Below, piece by piece: positions 29,211 through 53,564 of a stretch of 64,000 nucleotides of DNA. The stretch spans positions 1,302,001-1,366,000 of the forward strand of contig SMSO01000005.1 of the NCBI GenBank assembly GCA_004764695.1. Reading direction: 5' to 3'. Both the position numbers and the translations under genes were made by a program. Source of the DNA: Schizochytrium sp. TIO01 (lineage: Eukaryota > Protista > Bigyra: Labyrinthulomycetes). The notes below the pieces were generated by a model. The model was not told where the DNA came from and did no database searches. It was given only the letters and a program-made list of their open reading frames with translations. The number at the start of each line of letters is the position of its first letter. The first letter of the stretch is position 1.

Positions 29211-29246
<36 letters not shown>

Positions 29247-32200
29247 AAGGTGCAGTTGTTGTTGATGTTGAAGCTGCTGCTGTAGCAGTAGCTGTTGCTG
29301 TTGTTGATGATGATGATGATGATGATGATGTTGTTGATGTTGTTGTTGATGATGCTGCTGATGTTGCTGTTGCTGATGTTGCTGTTGCTGCTGTTGTTGT
29401 TGTTGCTGCTGCTGCTGCTGTGGTGTCTGAGACTGTTGTTGTTTTTGTGTATGCTGTGCCTGCTGCGATTGTTGTACTTCCTGTGGTTTTGGTGTGTGTT
29501 GAGGCTGCTGCGATTGTTGCTGTGTTTGAGACTGTTGTGGTTTTTGTAACGGCTGTGGCTGCTGCGATTGTTGTGGTTTTGGTATGTGTTGCGGCTGCTG
29601 CAACTGTTGTACTTGTTGCGGCTGTTGACCCTGTTCGGGGGAATGTCCAGAAAGGCCAAATACTTTCTTGATTTGGGAAGCATTAGAGAAACTGGCTTGG
29701 GAGGCCATCTTGACTGCATATTGTTTTATTGCTGGGGTTTCGATAATCTCAGAAACAACCTTTTGTACCTGTGGAGGGAATTGTTGAGAAGATGTAGCGA
29801 GGCTTCTCGAAGCATGGGGCTGGAATGTCTCAATCTTGTCTCCAGAGTTGTTAATATTGAGATATGCGAGAAAACGTAGCAATAGTTCAAAAAGAATTGG
29901 TACAGAGTGCTCCAAACCTAGGTCAGGCGGCATGCTTGCATTTGCAAATAGCATGCGCCAAAGCTTCCTTGAACTTGTTTTTGTTTCTTCCATTCCCTTC
30001 GCGAGTTCAGAAAAGTGGTCAGAGCTCTTGAGGATCTGCATCAGAATACGCTCCTCAGGAACTGCAACCTCTAGTTTTGAGCTCTCGTCTAAAACTTTTG
30101 TTAGGAGATCCTCATTCACAGGCCCCAGAATAACCTGTGATGTAGCAGTCTTTACACAAGCCTTCGCCGCAGCATTATTTTGTACTTTATGCATGTGTTC
30201 GTATGCAGCAACGAAGCCGCTACGTCCAGATTCAGGAATATAAGGGACATCATGTTGTTGGCAACAAGATTGACAGAAGAATTGTTGTGAGTTCGAAGCC
30301 AGAAGATCTACTGCATCCTGCTCTAGTCCAATACAATCTCCGTGAAACCATCCGTTGCAAGACCCGCAGCATAGCATCGACTTATCGAAGTCGGTCGTGC
30401 CAAAATCTGGCTTACGACATGAACAGAAGATATTTACCATTGGTCTTTTCCCATCACGAATCCGGCAAGATGGGCAATTGAAATCCTTCATCTCTTGAGA
30501 CTCGGCAAGTGAGATACCAACACACAATGGATGAAACCAATTTGAACAGGATGTGCAATGCACCATCGGATCTCTCTCACCATGGTCACGCTGACAGTAA
30601 CAAAACTTATTCAGCGATTTCTCTGGAAGGTCGAGCAGTTTTCCGTCGTAGATGCAAGTAGGGCAATGGAACTTGCCAAGTTCTTGCACGCGCTCCTTAG
30701 TGGTAGCGAGACACTGTGGGTGATACCATTCGTTGCATGAGTCACAAGCAAACATAAAGGTGTTTGAAAGGTTTGGCTTGCGACAAACGCAGTACAATTT
30801 TGTCTTACTTTTGGCGCGTGGCTCGATAGGTCCATCTTCCTCGCCTTGAACTAGCTGCCCCAGTGTTTCTTGGTCAATACACTGGTACGAAGCCTTGAGC
30901 ACAGCCCTCAAAGCGTCACTCTCCTCTATCAAAGTAGAGCTATTAGTTGGAGAGCTATCCGAGGATCGGTCACCAGGACATCTCTCATTTCCTACAGACT
31001 TATCAACGCGCAGTAAAAGTGCTTCAGAAGCCTGGTTGCGCCAAGTACGTACGGACGCGATGAAAGAGAGAATTTCTCGCATAACTTGAAAGTTCTCCTC
31101 AGTAATCCCTAATGCAAGACCGTCTTCAACAAACTTGAGCACTTGAGCTTCCCGCCAACGGCTTTTGTTATCAGCTCCAAAATGTTCGACCAAAGCACGG
31201 GCATCCTTCATCCAGTTTTCAATTTTGTCAGAAACAGCAGCGAGTTCAGCTTCCATCTCACGAGCAGGACGGAAAGCAAGTTCGGATAGGCTAGCAACTA
31301 ACTTTTGAACCTCCAACGCATTTCTTTTTGAACTCTTCATCTGCTCAAGATAAGTTGCTTCCCACTGCAAAACGTGATCAATACGCTCACGAAAACCTTT
31401 AGTAATAGTGTGCACGTCGATAAACTTTGGGAGCGAAGGGGTGTTGTCAAGGTGTTTCTTTGCTTCCCGTGCCAAAGGACGAGGCTCGCGCTCGAGAAAA
31501 CTTTTGGCTGTTTCAAGCCACTTGCAGGCGTCAACAGAAGACAACGCAGATTCGACCTCAGGACTTACACGAATACGGACGTTCTGTAGAAGCTCTTCTC
31601 TTGCGGTGGTAAGAAGAGATAAAGCTTCCTGATCTAATGGATTGTGCTCAAGCTTTTGATGACTTTCAAGAATTTTGCTTTCACACGTTTTTAGCGACTC
31701 AAGACGCTGTGATAAATTTAACACTTCAGGAATGGTAGATCCACCGCCACCACCATATCTCTGCACCGCTGCCTCTACCTCAGCAGCACTTGCCCAGCCT
31801 GACATGGGAAGCCGTGGAACCAAAAGAATACGGTTGAGGCTTTCGCGAACCTCTTGGAGAGCTTCACCAGAAGCTTTTAGCGCCATCACCTCTTTACTGT
31901 GAATACTAACTCCATAGCCTTGGGCTTGGTTAATTAAATTCTCTGCAGAACTTGCACCTGAATTGCCTTGAGCTTGCAATTTACCAAGAACATACACAAT
32001 ACCAGGAGCTAGTGTCTGGGTTGGAGATAGGGTCACTGGACCGCTTTCACTATTCATTTTGCACAGCTCAATGAGGGCAACTTCGGGGAGCTGGTCAGCA
32101 CTTGCAAGCTCTGCACCTGCAGCTGCTTCTTCAGGTAAATAAGTGTTCCATGCACCTTGGCGCCATTGGTTAAGCTTTGTTAAACAATCCCCAAGCTTCT

Positions 32201-35200
32201 TCAACATTGTATGTAGACGAGAGCTCGATATGATATGAAGGACCTCAAGGGAAGATGCGTCGGAGGAGGTGAGACCATGCGCAAGGCAATATGCTATCTT
32301 CTTGGTTGTCTTGTCGCCTTCTGACACGGCGCTTTCCTGAGGAATAACTACAGAGAGCGAACAAAATCGACGGCAAACTTTGCACTGGATATCGCTGACA
32401 CCTGCGGCACCACCCATGCGTGACATAGCCATTGCGTGAGCTCCGCTTACGCTACCACCTCTCTCGCGCCCATCAATCACTCGATTTGAACCACGACCTT
32501 TCTGCACGACTTGAGATCCAGCCAACTGAGGTTGGTTGCTAGTATCTTGGTTTTCTTGTTTTACCTTTTCCTTTCGATCGTTCATCCTGGCTTGTACGAG
32601 GTGGCTTGGCTCTTCAGAGATCACATTCATTCCCGCGTCCTCACACCTTCTCCTTAAATCAAACTCTGCGCTAAGCAATTTCAACAAGGAGGGGTAGAGC
32701 TTACGCGCAAGAGCAAAGGCTTCATCATCTTGTGATTTATCACCGACTTGAGCGGCACCAGCCAACGCATGATCCACAAGTGAAAGGAGTAGTGTACTGT
32801 GGGAAACTACGGGGTTCTTACGCAAGGACATATAACGCTCAACACAAGCATCACCAAAAGGCAGCCATCGAGGAGTAGCAAAGTTGACAGCCTCTGCACA
32901 GTTGATTCCATGGTTAAAACCGCCATGATAGCCCTGAGGGAAAGTTAAAACGAATTCGCCTTCTCGTTGAATGAGATGGTACACAGGAACATCAAGTTTT
33001 GCCAACTCACCAGGGTTAAATTGAGTAACAATACCAGTAAGTACATCCGGCCGAGCTGTGAAAAGGTCAGGAGTCAATTGACGCGCGGCCTCCTCAAATT
33101 TATGTGCGCCAGAAGAAGGTACACCATACCATGTCTTTGGTTCTCCCCAATGATGATAGTTTATTGATGCAAAGTAGTGATCTTCAGTGTGCCAGCAAAA
33201 GGAGCTGAAGAACATGCCCATATATAACCAGGGCACAATCACGCCTGTAATATCTTCTCCTACATATTGTAGCAGTGACCCCGGCAGTTTGGGGAAGTTG
33301 TTCAGGTTCCAAGGATCATTACGGTATTTATTTGCCAAGGCCAGAGAAATTGGGGGCTCCGTTACTGGAAGTGCACGGTTGTGGGTCGGAAAACCAGATC
33401 CAACTGAGCCAGTATCTAAATCACTACCGTAAGAAACTTTAAGATCTACCAGTTCCATGTCTGTACGGGCTACGTTCGATATCAGGCGCCAGTACTCTTT
33501 CTCTAAAGCAGCATCGCCTTCAGGAGTGTCAGCGTTGGCTAAGGCATCATGAATGAAAGAATCGTTGCTTTCGCGGGCCTTTGCGATGTATTTGTCCCGA
33601 AATGCATTACCCATATCCTTGTATTCCGGAATACTAAATGTCTGGCCTTCGCCAAAGCCAAATGACGCAATCCGCTTAGGTACTCGTGAGCTTCTGCCAT
33701 CGTACTGATGGGGACGTTGCTTAGCATGGGCTTGTGATGGATGCGGCACAGAATCTTTCCTTCCCGTTGTCAAGGATGCTGCTGTGGGAGTGGGAAATGA
33801 AGAGGATGATTCTTGCTTAATATCGCCCTCGTCTACCATCATGTGGTCGTCTGAATTTTTAGAGACATGATTGGAAGATTTCGTGCCCTCCTCTTCGACA
33901 CCTTGGCCGTCATCGGTTTCGTCTTCATCATCTTCATCGTCATCTTCCATGCATACCGAGCAGAACCAGTCGCCAGAAGGAATCTGTCGTGGCGCCGGCT
34001 CCAAACAGTTCGCGTGATATGCATAATTACAACCATCACATAAGAGCAAGGTAGCAGGGCTGTCGGCTCGTGTACAAATTTGACAAATACCTTCTAATGC
34101 CGCCTCACGAGCGAGAGTGCGACTACACCCAGAGGCGAGAAGCATGACCAGGGTCTCCCTGTCTACAGTCTCTTCGTGAGACAAAGTCCGTGCCGCGTCC
34201 TCAAATGTATACCGTACCTTGAACGCCTCCGCACTCGGAGCAAACTCAATTAGGTGCAAGGCTCCACGCTCAACATCCTCTCGAGAAGTTGCATCAATAG
34301 TCATTTGTTGGTCTTCAGGGAGAACACCTTCCATAACCTGACCAACCAAGCAATCCTTAAGGTCTGGAAAATATTTGTAAAAGGCAGCGCCAAGCACAAC
34401 ATCTGGGTCCTCGCGGGGGCCAAGTCTTTGACAAAGGCGCATCTTGGTCACACGAAGAGTCTGAGCAGCTTCGGCACTGCGACGCACAAGAGTCTCAACC
34501 TTAGGTGGGCGACCGCGTCGTTTCTTTCGTACTGGCTCACCATCTGCACCGAGCAAAATGCCATCAGAAATACTGGGGTCGGGAATATAAACGATTTCAG
34601 AGTCCTCGTAGGAGAGTGTCGGGTTACTTGCTGTCTCGATTTCGCTTGCAGCCTTACGAACCGCATAATCTGCTGCATCTTCACCCATTTGTCCTGCACG
34701 AGCACCCTCAATACCACATGCTACACTGCTGAAAGCTCGCGAAAGAAGAGCTTCAACAGAATCATTCTCGAAATCTGGGGGAACAACGCTATCCTGCGAA
34801 GTTGCTTCGTGCTCTGGAATTAGCAGAAAGGGGAGGAGGTAGCGCTCATATGCTGTTGCCAAGGCTTGAGAAAGGTTTTCCAGTTGTACACCATCTGAGT
34901 CGTTAGGCTCACCGATACTTGTAACAGGGACCAACACTCTTGTGATACCATGCCAAAACGTATTTTTTTGCGCTTGAGTGATGAGATCCCTCACTTTGTT
35001 CACACCTCCAGCTTTTTCAACTGCACTGTAGAGCTGATAGAGACGCACATTCTCCTCAGTGCCTGGCTTCGACAAACTTGGAATTTTCGGAATGGCTTGG
35101 TCGCCCATGGGGACTCCTCTTTTGAAGTGAAACTTGCGAACATCAAATAGAAATTCTCGTTCTACACGCGCGACACCATCGACCTTGGTCAGATTTTGCA

Positions 35201-35384
35201 CGCGAGTGTGGAATCTGAAGATTTGCGGATCCACTGCGAAACATGGTTTCCAATTTGCAGGGGGTACAATCTTGCAAATGCCTGCTTGTTCAGCCTCATC
35301 CCGGATAGACGAAATAAATTTCATAGGATCTTTGAATTCTTCGACCGTCGGGTGGTACACAGGTGCCTCCTTGATGAGCTCCAT
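28497..35384 (-). CDS. KDM5/JARID1-type histone H3K4 demethylase, 2295 aa
   Basis: JmjN (APVYHPTVEEFKDP...GICKIVPP), ARID-like region (LYQLYSAVEKAGG), PHD (CQIC...LLLCDGC...YH..CL...WFCSVC), JmjC with intact Fe ligands (WHTEDH, YHGGFN), C5HC2-like remnant, PLU-1-like helical region, three further PHD fingers and a polyQ/H tail. Confidence 0.93.
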
Positions 35385-36398: not shown

Positions 36399-38095
36399 AC
36401 GCGAGGACGATGAGTGCAATTATGAACAAATGAATGCCTTCTTCGAGATTGTATGCGGGGATAACGACGGAAACTCTCGCAGTAAGGAGAGGGATACTTA
36501 CGAAAGGCTGAGCTTGTGCACATGGAGCGATCGATGACCAGGGGATTTCTATCGAAGAAGCAAATTTGCTCGAAATCATGACGCTTCCAAGTGTAGGTAG
36601 CAAACCTTCCGTACATTGAGAGATTGATTATCTCACACGCAAATGGAAAATGAGAGCAGAAAGCAAAAGGTCTATCAGAAATTGGGGGAACTGCAAGCCC
36701 GAGAATACGCCTCGATAGGGCCAATAGAGTTCATGGAATGACTAGAGAATTTTCCCAAATTGGTGCTAAACAACGCAACATCGTGATCGTGGTGATGGAA
36801 TGTTTCATCTTATCGAAATTCGTCACTAATTATGGGTGGACAATCCTACATATTAGACCCACAGGACCTGAGTGTCACTAATCTAGAAGATGATGAAGGT
36901 GATAGAATCTTACCTTGGAGCTGTTATATCAGCTATGAGTTGCAAGTTGTATCCTGAAAAGACCATAGTCCGTGTGGTAAGCGCTCGGTGAGTTTTGCTG
37001 TAAAGCTCAGACAAACATGTATGGTGCCGTACGCATTTACGGATTTAGCACGTACGGCAGCATACATATTTAGCAGTTGCTTCTAGCTTGCTAATTCATT
37101 AATCGTCAGTTCCAGGCTTGGGGGAGACTCTGTCATCGCTGATGCAAGAGGCACTTCAAGAGTTCAGGAATCAAACTCCCTACCCGTGGAAATATGTATT
37201 TCTATCGCCTCGCCTCAAAAGCCCACATTGAACTCCAATATCAAGACGTAGGGCTCTAGTCATGAAAAGAGGCAAACTCTGCTATTTGCTAAGCGCCCTG
37301 GAGCAGCACAAAAGTGTCTCAGGCGGACCACCTACACAGTCCTCCATCGTCATCCTAAGAGCTGTTAGTCTCAGTCACCTATAAAAGGGTTTGTCTCCAG
37401 CACCACAATCCCAGATGTAGTGATGTAGTAGAGCAACTAAACCTCCACCCACCATCTAACATACTGACGGTGACGACCACAACCACGATGATGATCACGA
37501 TGGGAGTTGGCACGATGCTGGTCATGTTGGTTCCCAGCTCTTGGTTCTAAGACATCGCCTTGGCACTTCAAATCGCTTACCCTGGACCTAAACTCAAACG
37601 AACTCAACACCTCCTCGCAATCGATGGTGCCTCGGACTGGACTCTTCGCGCATCCATCGCAGTCCCATGTTCGATCAAGTTATGCGCGATATATGGAGAG
37701 AGCGGGGTCAAGTCAACAAAAACGAAATCGAAACGAAAGGACCCCATAGCGAACTCCTATGCCAAAGCCTATACACGCTCCAGTCTAAGTTTGATCGACT
37801 TTGACTTCCTCATCCTCTCTAAATACGATGTACCAACTATGTTAATCTACCTACTGCTTAAGTAATAGTCTTCAGTGAAATCTATGACGTCTACTTCAGC
37901 ATGATAAATAAGTGCAACTTTGTCAGAGGAATTGTCAGAATCACCAAAATCGTTGAAGAAGCAAATACCCTTCGCCACGGAGGTCCTGCTTGTCTTTGCG
38001 GCTGAGACCGGAGACCTGGCCTCTTCTGGAACTGGCCCTGGACCTGCTTGGCTAAGGGTGCTGCCGTTCTGCCAGTGGCCTTTGTGTAGTCAAAG

Positions 38096-39064
38096 ATGCT
38101 GCAGCTCAAGGTGCGGGCGGTGACCATGGCGGATGTCTCGAGTCTGCGAAGTCGCTGCGGCGAGAGCCTCAGCCACGCACTAGGTGACAACGCAATGATC
38201 GCCAGCATGTTTGCTAATGTTGCGGTGATGGTGTTCGTGCTGTGGTGGGTACAACGTCCGCTGGACCCTCAGCTCTTCCAAACGCTTTCGGGCGCGGCGC
38301 TTCTCACCTTTATTTATAAACGCGACAGCTCAAGTGCCGCTAAACGCGAAGCTTTAGGCCAGATGCGCCGCGCAATCTCCCATTTTGTTCAAGTTGAGGC
38401 TGACCTCTTTCGGGAGGCCCGTGCCTTTCGCAACGATGTCGCTTCCGAGGTTAATCTTGTACAGCAGCTTATTGACGATGAGCGCGGATTCTTCTATTCC
38501 TGGACGAGTTTTTGGCGCCGCGAGCCGATTCTCCGAGACACATCCCTTTACGAAGGCGCTGCTCTCCAGACGACCAGTGCTCTTGCAACCCTCCTCAACG
38601 GACCTGTGGCTGATAGGCTCGTCCAGACACGTGGCTTCGGACCCGTGGTTTTCGTGTGCCTGCCGAAGAACGCTCCGAGCGTCGAAAAGTCACAAAAATC
38701 TGTTCGAAACTCCTTCCGAGATTCTCTGCCGATGACTCTGCTGGTCGGGACCGAAAAGCCGAGGCATGTTCGTGTTTTTGGTGTATACTTTTTCGGCACG
38801 CTTATCACACGGTTTAGCGCGGCATCCGCAGTGCTTGCGATGTTTCCGGAAACGTTGGAGTCACCGCGGCTGCGAAGGGTTCGCAACGAGTCTAGAAGAC
38901 TCGTTGCAGTTCTAAGAGAACGGGAGGAAGAATTACAGAGGGTTGTCATGGCAAAATTCGGTATTCAAAACCAAAAGATGCAAAACAAGAAAGAAATTAA
39001 GCAAGTGAAGAAGACAATTGGAGATGCCGATGTGGCAAAGGCAGGGTCAAAGAAATTAGCCTAA
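38096..39064 (+). CDS. Hypothetical protein, 322 aa, with N-terminal hydrophobic helices and basic coiled C-terminus
   Basis: 969-bp ORF, GC-richer than its flanks; TM-like MIASMFANVAVMVFVLWWV. No family recognised. Confidence 0.5.
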   Translation: MLQLKVRAVTMADVSSLRSRCGESLSHALGDNAMIASMFANVAVMVFVLWWVQRPLDPQLFQTLSGAALLTFIYKRDSSSAAKREALGQMRRAISHFVQVEADLFREARAFRNDVASEVNLVQQLIDDERGFFYSWTSFWRREPILRDTSLYEGAALQTTSALATLLNGPVADRLVQTRGFGPVVFVCLPKNAPSVEKSQKSVRNSFRDSLPMTLLVGTEKPRHVRVFGVYFFGTLITRFSAASAVLAMFPETLESPRLRRVRNESRRLVAVLREREEELQRVVMAKFGIQNQKMQNKKEIKQVKKTIGDADVAKAGSKKLA

Positions 39065-39610
39065 AGAGTGGAACAGGGCGAGATAGTTACAAGGTGGGGA
39101 AGTAGCTACTGAAGGCTTCTGGTGAATGTAGCATAAGAAACGATCAAAATGTATCAGTTTAAAGGCACCTTGTAAATGGAGTCGTTTAATGTCGAAATGT
39201 TGAAGATAGAAAATTTAGAATAGTAGCAGATAAGATAAATTTAGAGAAGCACTTACCCAAAGAAATGGCCTTCCAACTTGAACTCTCAGATCCTTACTTG
39301 GTCACTGTGACACCAGTTTGTCAATCTCATTTATGTGGACCGCTGATCATTTTTTCTTCTTTAGAACCGAGGCAGTCTAAGGTACTTTCATTATTAAATA
39401 TTATATCTCTTCTCAAATCTCGAGTAGAATTGGCCAGCATGGCTTTGCCTTCTGATGCTTAAAGTATAGATTTGCTATTTCATGAACCTAACCATGTATT
39501 TGCAAAATCAGGCAATATGTTAAGGTGCATACATAAAAAGATAAATCATACACAAGAAAGTCTAACGGGGCAACACTGAGGTGGCAAGAGAGAAGAAGAA
39601 AATGTGCACA

Positions 39611-40498
39611 TTAGAAAGACTGTTCAAGACTATCGGGAGGCATACCATCTCCAATTATATCAAGATGGATCCTACCATTCAAAATATACTGTGCAATATT
39701 CTCAGGGTTTTCTGACCATTTGGCAGACTCAAGCGTATATGGAGGGGCTGTTATCTCATATATCGCAATGAAGGTGCTGATGAAGTCAATAAACCACTCC
39801 CAAAAGGGTTGATGAACTATCAAACCTTCTTCGCGTACTGCCCAAAATATTGTGCGCATCCACATGCGACAATCATCAAGCTTAAACCGACGGCCTTGAT
39901 GGATAAGTGCTCTCTTAGGGCAAAGCCAAGCATCTCGGTGAGCTTTTGTTCTTGCATCGCATGGGCGTTGGGAAGACCAAGCCTTTGAACTTGGATCCAT
40001 TCTTTCAATTATCCATGCGGCGAGTCGTTCACCATGCGGATCGAGGTGATTAGCAATGAATTTATCTAGCCATCGATCACGGAACATCTTACGATAAAAC
40101 CGGTTCGTCATTGCGACTATCCTCCCCTCGCTGATATCCTTGAGTAACAGCTTTGTCCGTTCTGTATCGTACGTCGAGCTAGGATCTGATATTGACGAGC
40201 TGCTATCAAACACAGCTTGTCGCGCAAGTATGATCTGTATACGGTTTTCTCGAGCCACAGGATCAGCATCTTGCGCCTCGACCCTCTGTAGCTCCTCCTC
40301 AGGAGCGTCTGGCCCAAGTAGAAGGTCTTCTTGCTCTTTTTTAGTCATTTTGATTTCTCCTGCACGGAAAGACTTGGCACTAGCATTGTAAGAATGCGCA
40401 TTCCCATTTACCAAGCTCTCAAATATACTTTCATCCCAGAGATGTTGCGCAAGCTTTGTTGCCTCTTTAGGGCTGAACTTGGTTTGCCCAGAACCCAT
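39611..40498 (-). CDS. Truncated (2/2) haemoglobin-like protein with predicted N-myristoylation
   Basis: Globin landmarks: NRFYRKM (B9-B10 FY), DKFI (CD1 F), KAHRDAW (proximal His F8) and CRMWMR (G8 Trp). N-terminus MGSGQTK. Confidence 0.65.
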   Translation of the reverse strand: MGSGQTKFSPKEATKLAQHLWDESIFESLVNGNAHSYNASAKSFRAGEIKMTKKEQEDLLLGPDAPEEELQRVEAQDADPVARENRIQIILARQAVFDSSSSISDPSSTYDTERTKLLLKDISEGRIVAMTNRFYRKMFRDRWLDKFIANHLDPHGERLAAWIIERMDPSSKAWSSQRPCDARTKAHRDAWLCPKRALIHQGRRFKLDDCRMWMRTIFWAVREEGLIVHQPFWEWFIDFISTFIAIYEITAPPYTLESAKWSENPENIAQYILNGRIHLDIIGDGMPPDSLEQSF

Positions 40499-41600
40499 TC
40501 TGTGCTACTATCAAACCTTGCGTCAGAACGCAGAGCCAAGGGCTAAAATCTCTCTTCTCAATTTAAGTTCGCTCTTGGCACTCATGGGTTTGCAATTTGC
40601 AGAATGCAATTTCCAGGTGTCGTGCACCACAATCGTCAGTTTACTAGAAAACCTTTTTACAGTGGAGGAGATCTTTGCACACAGGCTATTTACCTCTGTT
40701 GTATCTAGTAACATGCACCTCTCTAACTAAAAGAAGAAATATATAACATTTCTGGTGCGAATTTTAAAAGCCAAGTAAATGCCAATTTGCGAATTTGACC
40801 CTGTCTTAGAAAAAGGATATTAAATCATGATCCAACAAACAATGTTTATTTTTCCTTTTCCTGACTTACATCATTGCATCTTGCATTGTTTTGCCCTTGC
40901 ATGTGAACAGCCTTGGTATGATCTTTTGAGAGGATGAGTTTTTTTCTATTGCATATCAAGGTTTGCAGTTTCCTGTTTCTCATGATAGTCTGCACTGCGA
41001 AAAAACATAAGCACACACCTGAGCAGGCTTGTAGAACTGGTACTAATCATAGTTTATTATATCTGATACTAGTAGGTTGTGGTAGGCCTAAGAAGGTAGT
41101 GATAGGTACCTAGTAGTACCTATTACCTCCGTCAGAACCGGATAACGGGTAATTGGAAGTGCTGGAATGAATACTTGAAAGAAGACGTGGCAGGTAAAAC
41201 GAGTCATCATACAGCAATGCTCCAGAGCAGCAACTTAATAAATCGTGGCAACAAGCTGCAATAGTCTCCACAATTAAAGGAATGCTTAATTTGACATAGA
41301 CAGAACTCTGCGTCGCGTAAAATATAAGCTTGCAGACGTCTTTTCTGTCATTGCGGTAGGGCATTGCACTAGACCAGTACAAGTGTTCATCTCCACGAAT
41401 CAATTCCAGACTTTCGCGGTATGAGGAAAACTAGAGCTCGTTGGCATTCTGATCTTCCACAGGCTGTTGATTCGTTATTGTAGCGCATCAATCCACAATT
41501 TGGCACAGTACCCAACTTGTGGGGATTTCATTCTAATAATGGACTGCATCGGCATTTATTTGTTTGGCTTTTTTATTAAAATTGTAACTTGCAATCTTAA

Positions 41601-44600
41601 TTATCTTATTTTGAAGGGGGCTGCGACCTGAAAAGGATCCTCATCCCCCTCATGATCATCATCATCATCATGGATATTTGTCCGATAGTTGGAAATCTGC
41701 TGAGAGCCCGTGATCGAAGACAATGGAAAGCGACTAAAGTCACCTGCATCATCACTCATCTCCTCGTCACTCACTTCCGATTTGCCGTCATTGCCGGTTT
41801 CCCATCCGTGAGAAAAACGGATAATTAACTTGGGTATAAATATAAGCATAATCGTACCTGCTGATGTCACGAAAATAATAAAAAACTGTAGAATGAAGTT
41901 GGTGGTGGGATCTGAGGATGTCGAAAAAAATACTGGTATAGAGATAGCCAGAACTTCAAAGGCGGCTATTACGGCGATGGTGATAAAGCGCCCTTCATTG
42001 AACTCAGAAGGAATATTTCTACTCTTAAAACTCAAATAAAGTCCATAGACAAGAGAGAGGCACAATAAAGCAATAATGGGCGCAGCAAGTTTAATTGAAT
42101 AATCCGAGCGACAGAGGCCATAGGACTCCAAGGCATTACCCTCATCATCAGCTTTAATGAGGATGCGCGTGTAAATTAAGGGATCTGTCACCCACCAGTA
42201 TGCAAAGAGAGCTATAAGGAGGACAATGAGACAGAATTGGTAAATACGTAGCTTCTTGTTGGTGACGTACTGCAAACGAAGTCGCTCATCATTAAAGACA
42301 TGGATTTGTCTCCATGTTTTCAACCAAAGTGAGGAGTATACAATTGCAAAGCCCATACCATAAAGGACAGGCGCGAGCATGCAAGAAAGATTTAACGAGG
42401 CGCTAGATATAGCTTTGTCATCACTGGATTTTAAAGACACAGTCCCCTCATCGGAAAGATCCACAGCGACGAGCGTAGATGGCCCAACAATCCCATCATC
42501 TTGAAACGATAAAGGGATGGTGGCAGTTAGAGCAATTATACCACCACTAAGGATTTGCAGAAGAAAGGGTGGAGAAGCGACCAAGAGCAGTCGCCTTGTT
42601 TTGTTAAGCTGGACCCAAACAATTAATACGACGCAAAATAAGATAGCCATGCCTGTTAATACGTATGCAAAAACCAAAAATGCCAAAGGCACTAGCTGAG
42701 TGTCTTCTGTTGGCGTAAGAATCGAGACACCGTCACAAGTAATTGAAGCCAGAACGTTGTAATTTGTAGATCTAGAGAAATCGAGGCCATAAAGTGCTAT
42801 AGCTCCCTCGGCAGCAAGAGGCGAGCCTTCACTGGTTACCTCGGAACCGTCAAGTACAGCTCGCATTAGAAACCCAATAAAACGTGTGTTTTTAAGTCCA
42901 AAATCAACGCCAGTTTTATCGCAGCCACCGTCAACAGTAGAGGTATAATCTTGACGAGCCATGATGTCTAACGTCTGTACAGCAGGATAACAATTATCTG
43001 GAAGGTCTCCATGCAGGATCTCAAAGCTTGCACGATCCGCATCATAGAAGGATTGTACAAAACATGCTTGAATGGACCCTGTAGACGGCGGAACAAAAGG
43101 ATCAGAACCTGCAGTAGGAAGTTTTACCCATTCTGTGAGATCTGGGATGCTCCCTAAAACTGGCATATAACCTAACGAAAATTGATTCGATGCAATTGCG
43201 CTTTTTTGAGCATCCACCGTGTCTACGCAAACAACATTAGTAGCACTGCAATTTGCTTGGGCAATAATAGTGGAAGGCTCGTAGGTCTTCTCTAGATAAC
43301 CCCCAAAGTCTTTGGCGAGATCATCAAGAGAAAGGACCCGCACAATAATTATACCTTCACTAGGTAGTTCGACATCTGGATTAAGAGTCTGAATCCGAGA
43401 ATCATCCCATGTTGTAATACTTCCTCCAAAAATATCTGTAAGAACTGATGGAGTCATGTTGATTCCATTTTCGCCGGGTTCTTTCAGACCATTCTTTGTG
43501 GTTTCACATGCAGATGTATTTTGCACTGCTGAATGTGCGCCACAAAAGTTCATAAGAACACCAAGTCCAATGCCAGCATAAGGAAGCCGGAACAACCCAT
43601 TGTGGTATTTCCAATTGAAGCGACTTCCACTAGTAATGGCGACACCCTCATCTTGAGCTCGTTCAAAAGCCTCAGATGCTGTGCTTTCGTAAAACTCATC
43701 AAAACTTATATCGGAGTGTTCTGCTTCATATATGAGTTCATATTCTTTTAGAATGTTCTTTAGGGACGCAGCGCCAAAGTATGAAACGACAGATGGCTTT
43801 TCATCATCAAAGACAGGTTCTAATTCTCCAGTTGCCGCATTTGAGTACACCATGTCTTCTCGAAGCCTTGCTATAACCTTTTCACGCACCTTTTCTGTTA
43901 AAGGTGCAAATGCCAAATTTACTGCCATAGAACGTGGAACGTCATGGAGATAAAACCATTCCAAGAAGTTCTGCAATGCCAAAACATTTGACTTTTGTGC
44001 ACCTTTTCTTCGAGAGCTATCCTTCATAATGACAAAGTACGTATAACCAACAATTGGCCAAGCATGCGGACCCTGTGCGTTACTAATTTCTACCGTAAGG
44101 CGATCTTCTTCAAGCCTGCTCCCAGTCCCAAGACCCTTTTCAACCAGAGCATTGGAGACAGTGTCTGATTTTGCCACAACTGGAGCATACCCAGCAGTCT
44201 TAGCCAGACTTGCAAACGAAAGGCCGACAGCAAGAGCTTCACCAAGTACTGAGTAGCCAACTGAGCCCAGTTTTGTTGCGACAAAGCCTGCGACTCCTTC
44301 ATTTCCTTGGCGCTTTGTAACTACGCCTGAAAGAAAAGTATCATAGTTTTCATTACTTGCATTCCGTCCAATCAAAGACTCAAAGGTAGGGTCAACGTTT
44401 GAAAGAGTTTCTTTAAAAATCTCACTTGTGCCAGATCCATCTTCACGCACTACAACATGAATTTGGTAGTAATCTTCATTCGATAAACATGCCTGGATAT
44501 TCTCTTGGACAGAAGCACTCTCAGCGTACAGTATATTTAAGCCGACTATATCTGTATGATTCCACTCTGTAATTTCTAAGCGAAAAATTCGTGCTAGAGT

Positions 44601-45068
44601 TGTTAGATTGAGAACTAAGGTATGTCCTAGAGCATCCAACAAGGGTAGATTATAGATAGGAACTACGGCACCAGCCACGGCAGGGTACATCTGGGCACTA
44701 GGGTATGTGAGATAATCTGTTTCGCTGAGCAGTGAATCAGAGCCTGCGAAATCAAGTATGATTGGAGTCTCTTCGAAGGATGAACATGAGCCGTTAAGAA
44801 TACGGCATTTTCCATTTGATGAACCCATGCCTGTATACGATACATCGATGCTCTCATTCACAAAGCGATAGGCAAAAATGGCTTGCTGATACAAACGTTC
44901 AGGGAACGTTGCCCCCGCACCTCTTACGATGATCCGCCCATCAACTTCAGCGCTAATGTCTTCAGCTTCGATCAGGGCATCTACTTCGGCCTGAGAGAAG
45001 GCTGCCTTTGCGAGAATACTTGAGCTAGCAGCTAGGCTGAGTAAGAATAACAGAACAGACTTTCGCAT
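41601..45068 (-). CDS. Class C (7tm_3, GABA-B-like) GPCR with two extracellular PstS-type phosphate-binding-protein domains, 1155 aa
   Basis: Signal peptide; PstS motifs GAGATFP, GMGSSNG, DFAGSD, VVREDGSGTS and WPIVGYTY; a second, degenerate PBP repeat (DIFGGSITTWDDSRIQTLNP). 7TM with ASPPF, GFAIVYSSLWLKTWR, SRNIPSEFNEGRFI and FIPKL. Confidence 0.88.
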   Translation of the reverse strand: MRKSVLLFLLSLAASSSILAKAAFSQAEVDALIEAEDISAEVDGRIIVRGAGATFPERLYQQAIFAYRFVNESIDVSYTGMGSSNGKCRILNGSCSSFEETPIILDFAGSDSLLSETDYLTYPSAQMYPAVAGAVVPIYNLPLLDALGHTLVLNLTTLARIFRLEITEWNHTDIVGLNILYAESASVQENIQACLSNEDYYQIHVVVREDGSGTSEIFKETLSNVDPTFESLIGRNASNENYDTFLSGVVTKRQGNEGVAGFVATKLGSVGYSVLGEALAVGLSFASLAKTAGYAPVVAKSDTVSNALVEKGLGTGSRLEEDRLTVEISNAQGPHAWPIVGYTYFVIMKDSSRRKGAQKSNVLALQNFLEWFYLHDVPRSMAVNLAFAPLTEKVREKVIARLREDMVYSNAATGELEPVFDDEKPSVVSYFGAASLKNILKEYELIYEAEHSDISFDEFYESTASEAFERAQDEGVAITSGSRFNWKYHNGLFRLPYAGIGLGVLMNFCGAHSAVQNTSACETTKNGLKEPGENGINMTPSVLTDIFGGSITTWDDSRIQTLNPDVELPSEGIIIVRVLSLDDLAKDFGGYLEKTYEPSTIIAQANCSATNVVCVDTVDAQKSAIASNQFSLGYMPVLGSIPDLTEWVKLPTAGSDPFVPPSTGSIQACFVQSFYDADRASFEILHGDLPDNCYPAVQTLDIMARQDYTSTVDGGCDKTGVDFGLKNTRFIGFLMRAVLDGSEVTSEGSPLAAEGAIALYGLDFSRSTNYNVLASITCDGVSILTPTEDTQLVPLAFLVFAYVLTGMAILFCVVLIVWVQLNKTRRLLLVASPPFLLQILSGGIIALTATIPLSFQDDGIVGPSTLVAVDLSDEGTVSLKSSDDKAISSASLNLSCMLAPVLYGMGFAIVYSSLWLKTWRQIHVFNDERLRLQYVTNKKLRIYQFCLIVLLIALFAYWWVTDPLIYTRILIKADDEGNALESYGLCRSDYSIKLAAPIIALLCLSLVYGLYLSFKSRNIPSEFNEGRFITIAVIAAFEVLAISIPVFFSTSSDPTTNFILQFFIIFVTSAGTIMLIFIPKLIIRFSHGWETGNDGKSEVSDEEMSDDAGDFSRFPLSSITGSQQISNYRTNIHDDDDDHEGDEDPFQVAAPFKIR

Positions 45069-48000: not shown

Positions 48001-48155
48001 TTTGCAGAACGGTATGATTGCAGACCAGACCAGAATCAGTTCTGCCTAATATTCTCAACAAACCCATAAAACAAAGATAGGCTCCGCATCTGAGCTCGTG
48101 TTGATTGAATATAAATATAAACTGATACTTGGAATACAGAATACAAGTAAATACC

Positions 48156-50999
48156 ATGTCCAATGAACGTGTTGTACAAAGCGTGTTGACAACGATAGTT
48201 AACGTGCGAAAACGCATTCAAAACATTATGGTGTTACAAAGGCAGCTCGCATCTTTTGATCAAGTACTAAAGGTCATGGAGTTCGCGCTTTCAGAAAAAG
48301 CAGCGGAAGTTCTAAGTGGTCTTAACGAGCTTGAGTCGCTTATTGGTGAAGTAGGCCTTGCTCTCGATATTCTTAACTCTGATACGACAGACCGTCGCGT
48401 GACAAAGTTCATTGCATGCTGGCACAGTGAGGCTGTCAAGCGGCGGTTGTTGCGTCTCTCGACGCGTATTGTAGAAGTCTTCAAAACATTAGATATGTCC
48501 ATAGATCCTAGCGAGGAAGAGCTTCTTGAATATCTGATAAGTGATGAACAGCACACCCAAGACGACCGAGCTGATCGTGATCAACTCAACGAAGAGCTAC
48601 CATTTCTACTTGAAAGCCTCGAAGACATTATTGATCCTGAACAATATGCTTATCTTCGGAATGCACTCGCGGATGCTCTGGATGCGGGAGAATTTTGCTT
48701 GAGCAATGAAGGAGTAAAATATGCAATGTCTTCGGTTGCTCACGAACTACAAACCCTGGGCGATGAAGAGGAAATGGCAAACTTAACAGGGGATGACCTT
48801 CTCGTTGATGTGGACAATGAACTTGGTCGAGGAGGCTTTGGAGTCGTCTTTCTAGGACGATTCCTCGACATTCCATGCGCTGTAAAAATGATTGATATTG
48901 GTGAGGATGTAGTTTCCGACGCCGCACGGATTAATTTACGAAACGAAGTAAAAATCTGGCGAGAGATCAAACACCCAAACATTGTAGAATTTTATGGAGC
49001 TGCGATTGTCGATCATCGTATGCTCATGGCACTTGAGCTTTGTGATCTATCACTCGGCGAAGTGATACATAAACAACACGTGAACTTTTCACATGATTTT
49101 GATACTTACTGTGCAATTGCACGCGGCATCTGCCGTGCAGTGGCTCATCTCCATGCAAATTTTATCATTCATCGTGATATCAAGCCTAGCAATATCATGG
49201 TAAGCGAAAGCTTGCACATGGTCAAGCTAACAGACTTTGGTATGTCTCTGGCGAAAGAGGAAATTTACAGAAAGGCTATTACTTCTACGATTCGCGGCAC
49301 ACCAGTATACATGGCTCCAGAAGTTTGTTTTCCTCCTGCTCACTGGACATTTCGGGCCGATGTGTACTCTCTAGCCATTTTGTTGTGGGAAATGTTCAAC
49401 GGAGAGCACCCTTTTGAAGAGGAATCGAGTTCAATGCACATTATGCATCGTGTAGCGATGACCAATGAACGCCCCCCTCTGAATGAAGATATGCCTCATT
49501 GGCTATGGAAGGTAATGGAAAACGCCTGGGATCCCATCCCTGAACGTCGGCCTACTGCCGATATGATACTGTTGAAGATAGACAAACACTCAAAGGATAC
49601 GAGTCGCACAAGTATGCGGGTAATCGGGAACATGTTGAGCCGAATACGACGACGACCAGGAAAGCCGAGTGCCACGATGATGGCTCGGAAAGCATCAACT
49701 GTGGAATCTGCGAATCGTGTCTGTACACAAAATGAGTTCCGTCCAATAATGGGTAGCATCTTACGGAAGGGATCCCGAAGTCAGCCAGAGCCTCCTCTTG
49801 CACCACCCCCGGGCCTTGGACCTCGACCATCTTTCCATAGCATCGACAGTCTCGGACAGAATCCCTCGTTTTCAAGCCTAGGGTCTTCAATGGAAGGATT
49901 CTTTCCGAACACACAACATGCTCACTATCCTGACAGTTCGCATGACGGAGACGGGGAGGATGATGAAGAACTTGAAAAAGAAGATAATGAAGGTTTTCCA
50001 CTGAGGCAAGACTTGGCGCTTCTCCGTTTTCGATCCTACGATGACTCTTCATCAATCTCGCTAGGATCAGGTTCGGTCGGGCAGGCTTACGGCAAGCAGA
50101 CTGATGGCAGAGCCAACCTACTTGCCGTAGGTGGCATGTTCGGCCTAGAACTTTGGGATGCTCGCACTGGACGCAAAGTTAAGACTTTGCCTGGACACAC
50201 GGGAGCTGTTTTTGCTCTCAGCTTCTCTGTGAACAGTTCGATACTTGTTTCTGCTGCAGGAGATAGGACGATCCGGATTTGGGACACAGAAAAGTATCGT
50301 TGTACATCAACATTACGTGGACACAAAGATGCTGTAAATTGTGTTGCCATATCCCAGAACGCGAACATTATTGCCAGCGGAAGCAGTGATAAAACAATTA
50401 TGATTTGGAATCGTAAGTCTTCTGAAGTGGTATTCTCATTTACAGGCCATGGAGACGCAGTGACAGAAGTGTGTTTTACGCCAGACGAATCGAAGTTGGT
50501 CTCTGCTTCCCAGGATTGCACCATTCGAGTATGGTCACTACAGGATACAGGCTTACTATTTATCATACCTACTGGAAAACCTATCAAGAGTTTAGCTCTT
50601 TCTGCTGATGGTAACCAAGCTGCAGTAGCACACCCGGACAAAGTATTGGGGGTGTTTTCGTTAACCACTTTTGAATTAATAACTGAACTCCGCGCTCATT
50701 CTACCCCTGTGAATTTCGTTGCATGGTCTTCTGATCCTGGGGAGTTCTTTGCATCAGCTTCCCGAGGAGGCTCTATTCGATTATGGTCAGCGAGTGAGTT
50801 CGAGCAAGTTCGACAGTTGTCAGGTCATTCTTCACGATGCGACTTTGTTCGATTTAGTGCTAAAGGTGGATTTCTGATTTCCTGCTCCCGTGATCATACC
50901 ACAAGGATTTGGAATGTTAACTCCGGAAGGAATATCAAAACTCTTCAACACGAGACCATGCCTCTTTGCGCATCTTTCTCCCCCTTTTTCTTGCGCTAG
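48156..50999 (+). CDS. TKL-group protein kinase with N-terminal MLKL-like helical bundle and C-terminal WD40 propeller
   Basis: Kinase motifs GRGGFG, AVK, HRDIKPSN, DFG and GTPVYMAPE all intact. About 7 WD repeats (GHTGAVFALSFS...IRIWD; GHKDAVNCVAIS...IMIWN). First ~115 aa are amphipathic helices. First ATG is at 48156. Confidence 0.88.
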   Translation: MSNERVVQSVLTTIVNVRKRIQNIMVLQRQLASFDQVLKVMEFALSEKAAEVLSGLNELESLIGEVGLALDILNSDTTDRRVTKFIACWHSEAVKRRLLRLSTRIVEVFKTLDMSIDPSEEELLEYLISDEQHTQDDRADRDQLNEELPFLLESLEDIIDPEQYAYLRNALADALDAGEFCLSNEGVKYAMSSVAHELQTLGDEEEMANLTGDDLLVDVDNELGRGGFGVVFLGRFLDIPCAVKMIDIGEDVVSDAARINLRNEVKIWREIKHPNIVEFYGAAIVDHRMLMALELCDLSLGEVIHKQHVNFSHDFDTYCAIARGICRAVAHLHANFIIHRDIKPSNIMVSESLHMVKLTDFGMSLAKEEIYRKAITSTIRGTPVYMAPEVCFPPAHWTFRADVYSLAILLWEMFNGEHPFEEESSSMHIMHRVAMTNERPPLNEDMPHWLWKVMENAWDPIPERRPTADMILLKIDKHSKDTSRTSMRVIGNMLSRIRRRPGKPSATMMARKASTVESANRVCTQNEFRPIMGSILRKGSRSQPEPPLAPPPGLGPRPSFHSIDSLGQNPSFSSLGSSMEGFFPNTQHAHYPDSSHDGDGEDDEELEKEDNEGFPLRQDLALLRFRSYDDSSSISLGSGSVGQAYGKQTDGRANLLAVGGMFGLELWDARTGRKVKTLPGHTGAVFALSFSVNSSILVSAAGDRTIRIWDTEKYRCTSTLRGHKDAVNCVAISQNANIIASGSSDKTIMIWNRKSSEVVFSFTGHGDAVTEVCFTPDESKLVSASQDCTIRVWSLQDTGLLFIIPTGKPIKSLALSADGNQAAVAHPDKVLGVFSLTTFELITELRAHSTPVNFVAWSSDPGEFFASASRGGSIRLWSASEFEQVRQLSGHSSRCDFVRFSAKGGFLISCSRDHTTRIWNVNSGRNIKTLQHETMPLCASFSPFFLR

Positions 51000-51581: not shown

Positions 51582-53564
51582 TTATTTTGATGGAGGAGCA
51601 TATATTTCCTTGGGAACTTTCCTTTTGCTTGCAGGGTTGTTGCTCCACGATGAGTATAACTTGATCTCAAGTTTATTGATGGAGTCAACCAAGCTCTCGT
51701 AGCTGTCTTCCTGTGATGCGGTCATGTCAATCTTGTGCATGTGATCGAATGTGAGTCGGTGGTGAGTAGCCATCTCATTACAAAGGTAGGATACGACACG
51801 GGGACCGACACGGTACTCCCCCTCACGATCCTTTTCCAGACGAGCCTGGAAGTCAGCATGATCAATATTCACATATAAGTTTCGATCAGTCACAAAGCTC
51901 CGCTTTGGGACAACGTCAGGGTCGTCAGACCTAGCACGTACAAACTGAATCTGAAAGAGACCATCCTTTTGCTTTTTCTTGCGCTGTTGACGCTCTTCTG
52001 GCGTCTTACGAACAACAGGTTCATAATCAACATTGTCGACAGAGATGGGCTCATTATTTTTAATATCAGCTGCGGTGGCGTCGTCCTTGTTATCATCTAT
52101 TGGCAACTCTCTCGATTCTGAAAATTCAGTGTCGTCATCTTCAAGAGGATCCAAACCTTGCTCGTCTTGCTCCAAGAGAGATGCCATAGAGTCGCGAAGG
52201 GTGTCCTCTAGATCACTAAGGGTGTCCTCAACCGTCATGTCAATCACCTTTTGCAATTCTTTCATGAGCTCATCCTCAAGCTCACGGAGTTCTTTATAGA
52301 TAAATTTGCGGTTTGCAGACCGAACAAAGTCATCTCGGGTGAGCACAGGTGTGAGTGCCTTTCGCACTTCAATGCGTCCACATACGCTAGGGTGCTCCCA
52401 TAGCCGACCCTTGTACTTAGATTCTTCAAGAAATGATGAAAGACGGAATGCATCCGAAATAGCACGGCCACCTTTGAAAAAGCGAACACGTTTGTCTGAA
52501 TGGACCTCCTGGGTTACGATGACTTTCACATCCACTGTGGAGCCATCAGGGGCAGTAATGGTCCTCTCGAAACGGGTTCCTTTAATGCTGTCATAATCAA
52601 ACGCTTTGCACGTATGCTCTCGGCGGGTTGGCTTTCGTTTCTTGTTGCCGGGCGTGACCTTACCAACAATGATTCTTGCAGCGTTGTCACTAAGGAGTCC
52701 CTCAAAATGGTTTTCAATGTCTCGACAAAGGGAAATAAAACGAACGGATTCGAACCAGATCGGGTCAATGTCAAGCATCGCAACCACAGTTCCATGGTTC
52801 GAACTGTTCGGAAGAATACTCATTGGCGCTAGATCAGAGTCTGCTTCTTCACTTCTTGAAAGAACATACCGATCAAAGGCGTCACGGACAATCTCATCGG
52901 AAGCCAGAAGGGCATCCATTGGGATTTCATCTGGTCTCGGAACCTGGCTACTCCGGCGATCGAGGACGACGCTACGAACTTTGGCACCTTCTTCCTGAAC
53001 TGGAGATGTGTATACGCGCAGGGATTCTGCAGCAGCTCTAAACGCGTGTGCGCCAAAGCCAAACTGGCCGTTCAAGTATTCTACGTTGCGCTTTTGTGAA
53101 TCACCAATACCCAGCACGAGCTGCATCAGGTTATCCTTGTTCATACCCATACTGTTGTCCCGAATCCAAATTCGTTTCTTTGCAGAATCGATGTCAATCC
53201 TCACGTCAATTAAATGGTTGGGCTGGAACGCCTTGGTTTGCTTACCATCCTCAGCACTGTCTAGAGCGTTATCTACATATTCCATAATCACCCTCGGCAT
53301 GGACTTGTACGTAGACGCAATTGCATTCAGCAATGCCGTAGGATTTTTGATTTGCACTGCATATTCGGCCTCATCAGCACTGCCGGTTTCGATTTTAGAC
53401 TCAATAGCAGCGGGAGATACTCCACTTGCAGAATCCGAAGTTGCATACCTCAGACCGTGATTTGCGACCACCTGGCCAACACCATTGCAGTGTTGATATG
53501 CGGGTTTCGAGATTCTTGCATGGGCAAGATGATTTCTCGCGAGGGATCTCACGAGAGGCCGCAT
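51582..53564 (-). CDS. GHKL (HATPase_c_3, MORC/Hsp90/MutL-like) ATPase with mitochondrial-type presequence, 660 aa
   Basis: Bergerat-fold motifs EYVDNALD, DNSMGM, GQFGFG and HGTVV, followed by an S5-like region and coiled coil. Arg-rich, acid-free N-terminus MRPLVRSLARNHLAHARISK. Confidence 0.85.
   Translation of the reverse strand: MRPLVRSLARNHLAHARISKPAYQHCNGVGQVVANHGLRYATSDSASGVSPAAIESKIETGSADEAEYAVQIKNPTALLNAIASTYKSMPRVIMEYVDNALDSAEDGKQTKAFQPNHLIDVRIDIDSAKKRIWIRDNSMGMNKDNLMQLVLGIGDSQKRNVEYLNGQFGFGAHAFRAAAESLRVYTSPVQEEGAKVRSVVLDRRSSQVPRPDEIPMDALLASDEIVRDAFDRYVLSRSEEADSDLAPMSILPNSSNHGTVVAMLDIDPIWFESVRFISLCRDIENHFEGLLSDNAARIIVGKVTPGNKKRKPTRREHTCKAFDYDSIKGTRFERTITAPDGSTVDVKVIVTQEVHSDKRVRFFKGGRAISDAFRLSSFLEESKYKGRLWEHPSVCGRIEVRKALTPVLTRDDFVRSANRKFIYKELRELEDELMKELQKVIDMTVEDTLSDLEDTLRDSMASLLEQDEQGLDPLEDDDTEFSESRELPIDDNKDDATAADIKNNEPISVDNVDYEPVVRKTPEERQQRKKKQKDGLFQIQFVRARSDDPDVVPKRSFVTDRNLYVNIDHADFQARLEKDREGEYRVGPRVVSYLCNEMATHHRLTFDHMHKIDMTASQEDSYESLVDSINKLEIKLYSSWSNNPASKRKVPKEIYAPPSK

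Follow-up and report, generated by a model that had tools for sequence, protein, structure and literature searches.

Eukaryotic microbial perception of external phosphate is poorly understood, and the known eukaryotic phosphate systems depend either on internal sensing (SPX/inositol pyrophosphate) or on transporters that serve as sensors. Whether diatoms possess a surface phosphate sensor is an explicitly open question (PMC11448323). Could such a sensor be a G protein-coupled receptor (GPCR) that has taken up a bacterial type of phosphate-binding domain? This question is raised by a gene of the thraustochytrid Schizochytrium sp. TIO01 (Labyrinthulomycetes), located at positions 41601-45068 on the minus strand of the window examined here, which is a 64,000-nucleotide stretch of contig SMSO01000005.1 (assembly GCA_004764695.1, positions 1,302,001 to 1,366,000). 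The predicted product joins two domains with the fold of bacterial PstS to the seven-transmembrane (7TM) domain of a class C GPCR; the first PstS-type domain (D1) keeps a complete set of phosphate ligands, and the second (D2) is degenerate. We consider it fairly probable that the protein detects inorganic phosphate outside the cell and passes the signal to G proteins. A GPCR whose predicted ligand pocket matches the best-understood phosphate-binding site residue for residue offers a candidate surface sensor that lends itself directly to testing.

A single-exon gene for a class C receptor with a PstS-type ectodomain

The locus translates as one open reading frame (ORF) of 1155 residues without an internal stop. 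Its features are given below, with residue numbers referring to the protein; scores are the predicted local distance difference test (pLDDT), the template modelling score (TM-score) and its predicted counterpart (pTM).

41601..45068, minus strand: whole coding sequence, 1155 residues plus stop codon; single exon, with no splice joints in any of the four sequencing runs compared
45000..45068, minus strand: predicted signal peptide, approximately residues 1-23; hydrophobic segment 5-23 after basic R2 and K3, a low-pLDDT helix in the model, assigned without a dedicated signal-peptide predictor
43839..44936, minus strand: D1, intact PstS-type predicted phosphate-binding domain, residues 45-410; PstS structures at E 3e-22, TM-score 0.90, pLDDT ~90
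44904..44909, minus strand: T54 and F55, aligned with PstS T10 and F11; family members have T or S at the T54 site and, for the most part, F at the F55 site
44820..44822, minus strand: S83, equivalent to PstS S38 in the alignment to PstS and in the family alignment
44736..44738, minus strand: D111, aligned with PstS D56; invariant in the seven closest homologs
44427..44447, minus strand: R208-E-D210-G-S212-G213-T214, aligned with PstS R135, D137, S139, G140 and T141; family majority R-x-D-x-S-G-T
42699..43838, minus strand: D2, degenerate PstS-fold repeat, residues 411-790; hhalign against D1 99.7%, AlphaFold pLDDT 81, pTM 0.82
41808..42686, minus strand: class C GABA-B-like 7TM, residues 795-1087; Pfam 7tm_3 E 1e-31, GABA-B2 E 1.6e-13, seven helices
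41604..41807, minus strand: cytoplasmic tail, residues 1088-1155; disordered (pLDDT <50), acidic, with a conserved terminal D-P-F

An earlier reading of the window, made from its letters only (hereafter the sequence-only reading), had proposed a signal peptide, one PstS repeat with and one without the ligand residues, and a GABA-B-like 7TM, all within a single gene and with a type II periplasmic binding protein (PBP) ectodomain rather than a type I Venus flytrap. Hydropathy of the whole protein agrees with this outline in having an N-terminal hydrophobic signal segment, the one that follows R2 and K3, and seven further hydrophobic segments. Eight of the ten N-glycosylation sequons lie within the ectodomain, which is composed of two PBP_like_2/PstS folds, while a Pfam search of the protein returned no match to ANF_receptor or Peripla_BP_6. 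Judged from these features, this is a real, intact, single-exon thraustochytrid gene encoding a predicted plasma-membrane class C receptor in which a PstS-type module takes the place of the type I Venus flytrap.

The predicted phosphate site of D1

Pfam PBP_like_2 matches residues 47-372 in two stretches (E 4e-22, 79.5 bits against a cut-off of 27), and for D1 (residues 25-410) an alignment over the whole domain was obtained with the PstS structures of Yersinia and E. coli (E 3e-22, covering PstS residues 4-308). All eight phosphate ligands of E. coli PstS are retained in this alignment as T54, F55, S83, D111, R208, S212, G213 and T214, and D137 of PstS is also matched, by D210; the motifs ATF, GSS, GSD and R-x-D-G-S-G-T that had been singled out from the letters thus each map to PstS ligands. 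The D56 carboxylate of PstS prefers protonated phosphate over sulfate, and D111 presumably occupies this same discriminating position. When the full-length AlphaFold model was compared with E. coli PstS by Foldseek, D1 superposed with a target-normalised TM-score of 0.90 at 26% identity, which is the structural agreement that the earlier reading had anticipated. D1 also carries eukaryote-type insertions and two cysteines, C88 and C95. The exact [T/S]-F-S-D-R-D-S-G-T set is found in about half of 42 family representatives and likewise in the closest orthologs and in a paralog in the same genome, and this retention points to selection on the site. On this evidence D1 is a PstS-type domain with a complete ligand set, which would be expected to bind phosphate.

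The degenerate second repeat

The two PBP_like_2 domains and one 7tm_3 domain that had been expected were only partly recovered by Pfam, which reported one PBP_like_2 (47-372) and the 7tm_3; D2 was recognised by profile comparison and by modelling instead. As a single sequence D2 matches PstS weakly (E 8e-5 over 59 residues), but a D2 profile built from 22 family members aligned with the D1 profile over 318 columns with an hhalign probability of 99.7% (E 8e-27). An AlphaFold model of D2 alone has a complete two-lobed fold (mean pLDDT 81, pTM 0.82), and its best matches in the PDB are all PstS proteins (E 2.6e-18, target-normalised TM-score 0.75-0.78). The profile alignment and the exclusively PstS matches of the model indicate that D2 is a true second PstS fold. 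Every ligand side chain, however, has been replaced (T10>A, S38>A, D56>S, R135>V, D137>S, S139>D, G140>D and T141>L in PstS numbering), so that the predicted loss of the ligand residues from the second repeat is upheld and D2 appears to be a ligand-dead PstS fold, phosphate binding by which is very unlikely. Other positions are conserved, among them five cysteines (C509, C669, C693, C716 and C778) as well as W554 and P695. The domain ends approximately 15 residues before the first transmembrane helix (TM1) with a conserved S-I-T-C-D-G motif, and, as in GABA-B, no cysteine-rich domain was found between D2 and TM1.

The sequence-only reading had also entertained D2 as a site for a second ligand. 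Among the closest orthologs the loop corresponding to PstS 135-141 differs in both length and sequence, with a tendency towards acidic residues, which speaks against a conserved anion site there; a second anion site in D2 is accordingly unlikely. A related explanation is that the architecture is as described but the ligand is not phosphate, being instead a related oxyanion or phosphorylated compound such as arsenate, phosphite, pyrophosphate or an organophosphate, with D2 possibly contributing a second ligand. The family offers this explanation some room: approximately half of the 42 representatives are changed at one or more ligand positions, which implies that specificity has drifted and that phosphate may not be the ligand throughout the family, and the two lobes of D2 are complete, with conservation of cysteines (including C669 and C693), W554 and P695. 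For the protein considered here, its paralog and its closest orthologs, however, the full PstS set including D111 has been kept, and in D2 the variable loop places acidic residues at the position of the PstS anion hole. We regard a different ligand as quite unlikely for this receptor, and phosphate is retained as the preferred candidate.

The class C transmembrane domain and cytoplasmic tail

Pfam 7tm_3 covers residues 801-1080 (E 1e-31, 110.7 bits against a cut-off of 33.5), and the closest solved 7TM is that of GABA-B2 (E 1.6e-13). The motifs that align with GABA-B2 include KTWR at the end of TM3 (K917-R920), an N-E/D before TM6, the P-K of TM7 and the cysteine of TM3. Among 46 family members K917, R920, C896, C986 and E1025 show either no variation or at least 90% conservation, and the seven closest homologs all share P1079 and K1080. 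The first five of these residues occupy the positions of the class C ionic lock and of the disulfide between TM3 and the second extracellular loop (ECL2; C896 and C986). In the full-length AlphaFold model the 7TM, like D1, has a pLDDT of ~90 and forms seven helices with the C896-C986 pair and a beta-hairpin in ECL2 (residues 965-987), and Foldseek matches the modelled domain to GABA-B receptors and GPR156. The C-terminal part therefore models as a class C 7TM, and its assignment as GABA-B-like, first made from the letters, agrees with both the profile scores and the aligned motifs.

The tail is disordered and acidic, and a D-P-F near its end (approximately 4-11 residues from the terminus; residues ~1143-1155, window 41604-41640) is shared with the two closest orthologs (P0002 and P0003). 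Motifs of the DPF type are able to interact with AP-2, an adaptor of endocytosis. ECL1 (residues 854-891, window 42396-42509) contains an acidic and serine-rich insertion of approximately 20-25 residues relative to other homologs; it is also present in the Hondaea ortholog and is modelled at low confidence (pLDDT ~55).

Paralog, transcripts and strain variation

The nearest named protein is that of another thraustochytrid, Hondaea fermentalgiana, which is 58% identical, 1144 residues long, contains the same pair of Pfam domains and has been automatically named "GABA type B receptor subunit 2". A search of the 64-Mb, 37-contig genome assembly, which supplied the paralog count that had been called for, found one full-length paralog (L002, G000:C13:5354837-5358121) that is 39-42% identical and keeps the whole phosphate site. 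The presence of two such genes bears on another explanation, in which the receptor signals without heterotrimeric G proteins (through its acidic tail, endocytosis or partner kinases) or is an obligate partner without output of its own, as GABA-B1 is to GABA-B2. A disordered acidic tail with a conserved terminal D-P-F would suit the first version, and two paralogs in one genome would allow the heteromer of the second. Set against these points, the 7TM is closest to GABA-B2, the subunit that couples to G proteins, and both paralogs keep the full phosphate site, unlike the division of labour in GABA-B. Either version is therefore distinctly unlikely, and coupling to G proteins remains the preferred reading.

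The paralog agrees (1154/1155 residues) with an MMETSP transcript whose annotation is that of a complete ORF, from which it follows that a single mRNA encodes the PstS-PstS-7TM fusion in this organism or a nearly identical strain. For the window gene itself, contigs from three runs whose type was guessed to be RNA tile across both domain junctions without a splice joint; such contigs cannot prove a single transcript. Two of these runs, X5 and X9, consist of patchy, low-depth pieces roughly confined to the gene and its 5' side. Record 10 of X5 (42663-44237) spans the D1/D2 junction and ends 29-30 bases beyond the D2/7TM boundary (42698/42699), just below the 31 letters at which a bridge across a junction was counted, and record 9 of the same run begins four bases from record 10 and continues into the 7TM. 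A further run, X1, contains a 6.6-kb contig (record 1, ~38000-44585, mean depth ~100) that crosses gene boundaries, spanning two ORFs without a Pfam match (38096-39064, plus strand; 39611-40498, minus strand) and then two-thirds of the receptor gene at its 3' end; the rest of this gene has a depth of ~5 in that run. Highly expressed neighbours may have been merged by the assembler, or DNA may have been present in the run. The argument for one mRNA therefore rests on the MMETSP transcript of the paralog.

These data also bear on whether the fusion is an artefact, that is, two adjacent genes merged, a pseudogene or a bacterial contaminant. Such an origin could draw on the fact that no run containing the gene is on record as RNA and on the X1 contig that crosses gene boundaries. 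It is opposed by the unbroken 1155-residue frame, by dozens of full-length homologs in several eukaryotic lineages and by the complete paralog transcript. Strain variants within the coding sequence (14 synonymous and 10 nonsynonymous) include no stop or frameshift and none at a ligand residue, a pattern consistent with purifying selection. The neighbours are ordinary eukaryotic genes, encoding a KDM5-like JmjN/JmjC/PHD protein of 2295 residues (28497-35384, minus strand) and a protein with a protein kinase domain and a WD40 propeller (48129-50999, plus strand); a 660-residue HATPase_c_3 protein (51582-53564, minus strand) is encoded nearby as well. Contamination and gene merging are set aside in view of the intact ORF, the paralog transcript, the eukaryotic neighbours and the variant pattern, and the base composition, which is uniform across the region, likewise argues against them; an artefact of any kind is extremely improbable. 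The proposal of a single gene, which separate transcripts for the two halves would have contradicted, is thus consistent with both the unbroken frame and the single complete-ORF transcript of the paralog. The neighbouring genes have no evident functional link to the receptor.

Distribution of the fusion and prior descriptions

When 1.84 billion cluster representatives were searched exhaustively with HMMER, 154 matches at E <=1e-30 were obtained; the family amounts to dozens of clusters at 50% identity, and a PstS-type domain and a 7TM occur together in at least 60 of the 158 proteins collected. In members where a single-sequence search missed D2, a spacer of ~300-480 residues is still present, and the D2 profile matches 20 of the 21 such spacers long enough to test (E 1e-20 to 1e-63). 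The tandem D1-D2-7TM arrangement was found in at least 49 of the 53 members examined, from several lineages, so that an architecture search across eukaryotes, as the sequence-only reading had suggested, reveals a tandem design of one apparently live and one apparently dead PstS domain in nearly all members examined. Named members include two genes of Hondaea fermentalgiana, proteins of Plasmodiophora brassicae (for example CEO97692.1), one protein of the raphidophyte alga Heterosigma akashiwo (CAN0139913.1) and two proteins labelled Batrachochytrium salamandrivorans (KAH9253170.1 and KAH9250086.1), with further members in several transcriptomes and metagenomes. Automatic names of the fusion in public records range from "phosphate transport system substrate-binding protein" to "GABA-B receptor subunit 2".

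PstS-type domains are widely reused in eukaryote-like proteins. Some large proteins contain up to four PstS-type repeats or other long extensions, as in P0032 (2386 residues, four D1-like repeats), and other public fusions combine 7tm_3 with Peripla_BP_4 or with SBP_bac_1 and SBP_bac_8 (P0008, P0009, P0032, P0054 and P0155 are among the unusual proteins).

The architecture itself is not new, having been published twice in passing. Krishnan et al. 2012 report PBP_like_2 at the N-terminus of a single GPCR of the glutamate family in the chytrid Spizellomyces punctatus (SPPG_06488), and place PBP_like_2 in Pfam clan CL0177 and the flytrap in clan CL0144 (PMC3251606). Rolfe et al. 2016 describe four Plasmodiophora genes with PBP_like_2 and 7tm3, which are single coding regions by transcript data, and regard their products as "phosphate transporters" of a new class, thought to be unique to Plasmodiophora (PMC4815078). 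These listings and the automatically named records bear out the earlier suspicion that similar fusions might already be annotated elsewhere. The available parts of the two papers (PMC3251606 and PMC4815078) make no mention of an intact phosphate site, of degeneration in the second repeat or of how widespread the tandem design is, and a 2025 survey of fungal GPCRs counts 7tm_3 genes and does not mention their ectodomains. What the present analysis adds is the phosphate site at residue level, the identification of D2 as a dead PstS fold, the near-universal tandem design, the finding of no PstC/PstA-type permease (see below) and the taxonomic spread.

Genomic context: signalling partners, transport and alternative sensors

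The genome contains at least 13 intact G-alpha genes, which means that heterotrimeric G-protein signalling is both available and expanded. Four G-alpha genes form a 26-kb cluster (G000:C30:1577709-1603772); another copy, C8:834-1880, scores the same as C30:1602726-1603772, so contig C8 may represent a duplicate or haplotig of that stretch. The 64-Mb genome yielded no match to BPD_transp_1, to which the PstC/PstA-type permeases belong, whereas the same search was positive in 14 of 14 control genomes. With no importer found, the PstS domain most likely acts through its fusion partner, and D1 would be a domain of PstS type rather than a component of PstS transport. PstS-type domains were found in three genes of this genome only, namely the window gene, its paralog and a third membrane protein without 7tm_3. 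The third domain (L038, G000:C33:537187-538185) is 26% identical to D1 and lies in an open frame of 880 residues.

An alternative that these results address is that the protein is a membrane-anchored phosphate scavenger, a transport accessory or a "transporter", in which the 7TM acts mainly as an anchor and no G-protein signalling takes place; as a scavenger or accessory it would enrich phosphate on the cell surface for other, separate transporters. This explanation is in line with the interpretation given to the Plasmodiophora homologs by Rolfe et al. 2016 (PMC4815078), and the third PstS-domain membrane protein indicates that surface PstS domains are used outside GPCRs. Nevertheless, 46 members share conserved class C activation residues and a conserved TM3-ECL2 disulfide, which would be needless for an anchor, and G-alpha genes are abundant. 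Moreover, 7tm_3 is a receptor fold with, to our knowledge, no known transport activity. It is improbable that the protein is a scavenger or transporter, and a signalling receptor for phosphate remains the favoured reading.

The genome holds approximately 22 other 7tm_3 genes, and among the 17 examined the paralog has a PstS ectodomain, approximately nine have an ANF_receptor flytrap, and several have ectodomains of ~750 residues that match no Pfam family. Three or four tandem 7tm_3 genes of ~1030-1066 residues are located at G000:C35:786500-813000 (L021, L022 and L026), and two of their ectodomains have only sub-threshold Cache matches (dCache_2 and sCache_2, E 5e-7 to 3e-4); the joining of a class C 7TM to an ectodomain of Cache type would, if true, be a further unusual exchange of sensors. 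Four class C 7TM genes on contigs C36, C33 and C3 (L018:1852-5025, L024:1524-4703, L028:2077-5232 and L017:2145-4820) have ectodomains of 530-760 residues for which no Pfam match was obtained at E 1e-3. In this genome the class C 7TM is a module combined with different sensors, including type I flytraps, type II PstS domains, possibly Cache-like domains and regions without a Pfam family, and the PstS family is a clear case of the class C 7TM accepting unrelated bilobed binding domains.

Proposed mechanism and significance

In the proposed mechanism, orthophosphate would bind in the D1 cleft through a dehydrated hydrogen-bond network as in bacterial PstS, with contacts from T54, F55 (backbone NH), S83, D111, R208, S212, G213 (backbone NH) and T214 and with D210 positioning R208. 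D1 would then close around its hinge, the closure would be relayed through the rigid, ligand-dead D2 and the stalk of ~15 residues to TM1, and the 7TM would activate one of the many G-alpha proteins. The physiological output might be, for example, control of phosphate uptake or of behaviour towards phosphate. The parts of this scheme that we infer are the binding of phosphate, the path that the signal takes and its direction, coupling to G proteins, dimerisation and the output.

Several observations weigh against it. D1 scores below the cut-off of the NCBIfam PstS equivalog TIGR00975 (E 1e-55, 189.1 bits against 205) and does not reach that of NF008171 (124.5 bits against 339), and the ligand drift described above touches about half of the family representatives. 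D1 lies one whole domain from the membrane, so that its closure would have to act across that distance to reach the 7TM. The full-length model has a pTM of 0.57, so the mutual arrangement of the domains is uncertain, and a predicted complex of D1 (25-410) and D2 (411-790) scored 0.26 against a mark of 0.32, which speaks neither for nor against a fixed interface. Expression of the window gene, as opposed to its paralog, rests on guessed run types. Finally, just as the sequence-only reading had supposed that no receptor of this design was functionally characterised, no functional study (binding or signalling) of any PstS-GPCR, and none of phosphate sensing by GPCRs in thraustochytrids, was found in the literature.

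A bolder extension would treat the tandem of live and dead PstS domains as an in-cis equivalent of the GABA-B subunits GB1 and GB2, and the family as an old group of plasma-membrane orthophosphate receptors in several eukaryotic supergroups that supplies the missing surface sensor of stramenopiles and other protists; drawn by analogy, this extension is rather unlikely to hold. The value of the finding is tempered by the earlier mentions of the architecture and by a function that is wholly inferred. It is nonetheless widened by relatives in a harmful-bloom alga (Heterosigma akashiwo), a crop pathogen (Plasmodiophora brassicae) and zoosporic fungi. Thraustochytrids can be cultured and some can be transformed, so that work could practicably start from this gene and its paralog.

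Comparison with known systems

The fusions of Plasmodiophora and Spizellomyces have the same pair of domains in the same order as the receptor described here and differ in lineage, belonging to Rhizaria and chytrid fungi, respectively, rather than to Labyrinthulomycetes. The Plasmodiophora brassicae protein P0078 is a direct homolog (E 8.5e-47) with D1, D2 and 7TM and the ligand set T-L-S-D-R-D-S-G-T. Bacterial PstS (E. coli, PDB 1ixh and 9k3x) resembles D1 in its full-length fold and in all eight phosphate ligands; it is, however, a free periplasmic protein of the PstSCAB importer, whereas D1 is fused to a dead copy of itself and a 7TM.

Metazoan GABA-B (GB1/GB2, PDB 6uo8 and 7eb2) provides the closest solved 7TM, that of GB2, and likewise lacks a cysteine-rich domain before TM1. 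Its ectodomain is a type I ANF_receptor domain (CL0144), while that of the present receptor is a type II PBP (CL0177). In GABA-B the bilobed domains are carried on two subunits; here both are in tandem on one chain, and the ligand would be an inorganic anion. The pairing of a putatively live with a dead PstS domain nevertheless recalls the binding flytrap of GB1 and the non-binding flytrap of GB2. The mammalian calcium-sensing receptor (CaSR) similarly belongs to class C and reacts to inorganic ions outside the cell, and its modulation by phosphate has been reported. In contrast to the protein described here, CaSR has a type I flytrap and a cysteine-rich domain, and phosphate is a modulator at anion sites without a dedicated PstS-type pocket. 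Bacterial sensors that depend on solute-binding proteins (SBPs) follow the same logic, in that a binding protein of the transporter type is reused as a signalling input (PMC8050422). There the SBP mostly exists as a protein of its own and docks on a chemoreceptor or sensor kinase, whereas in the thraustochytrid gene it is covalently fused to a eukaryotic GPCR.

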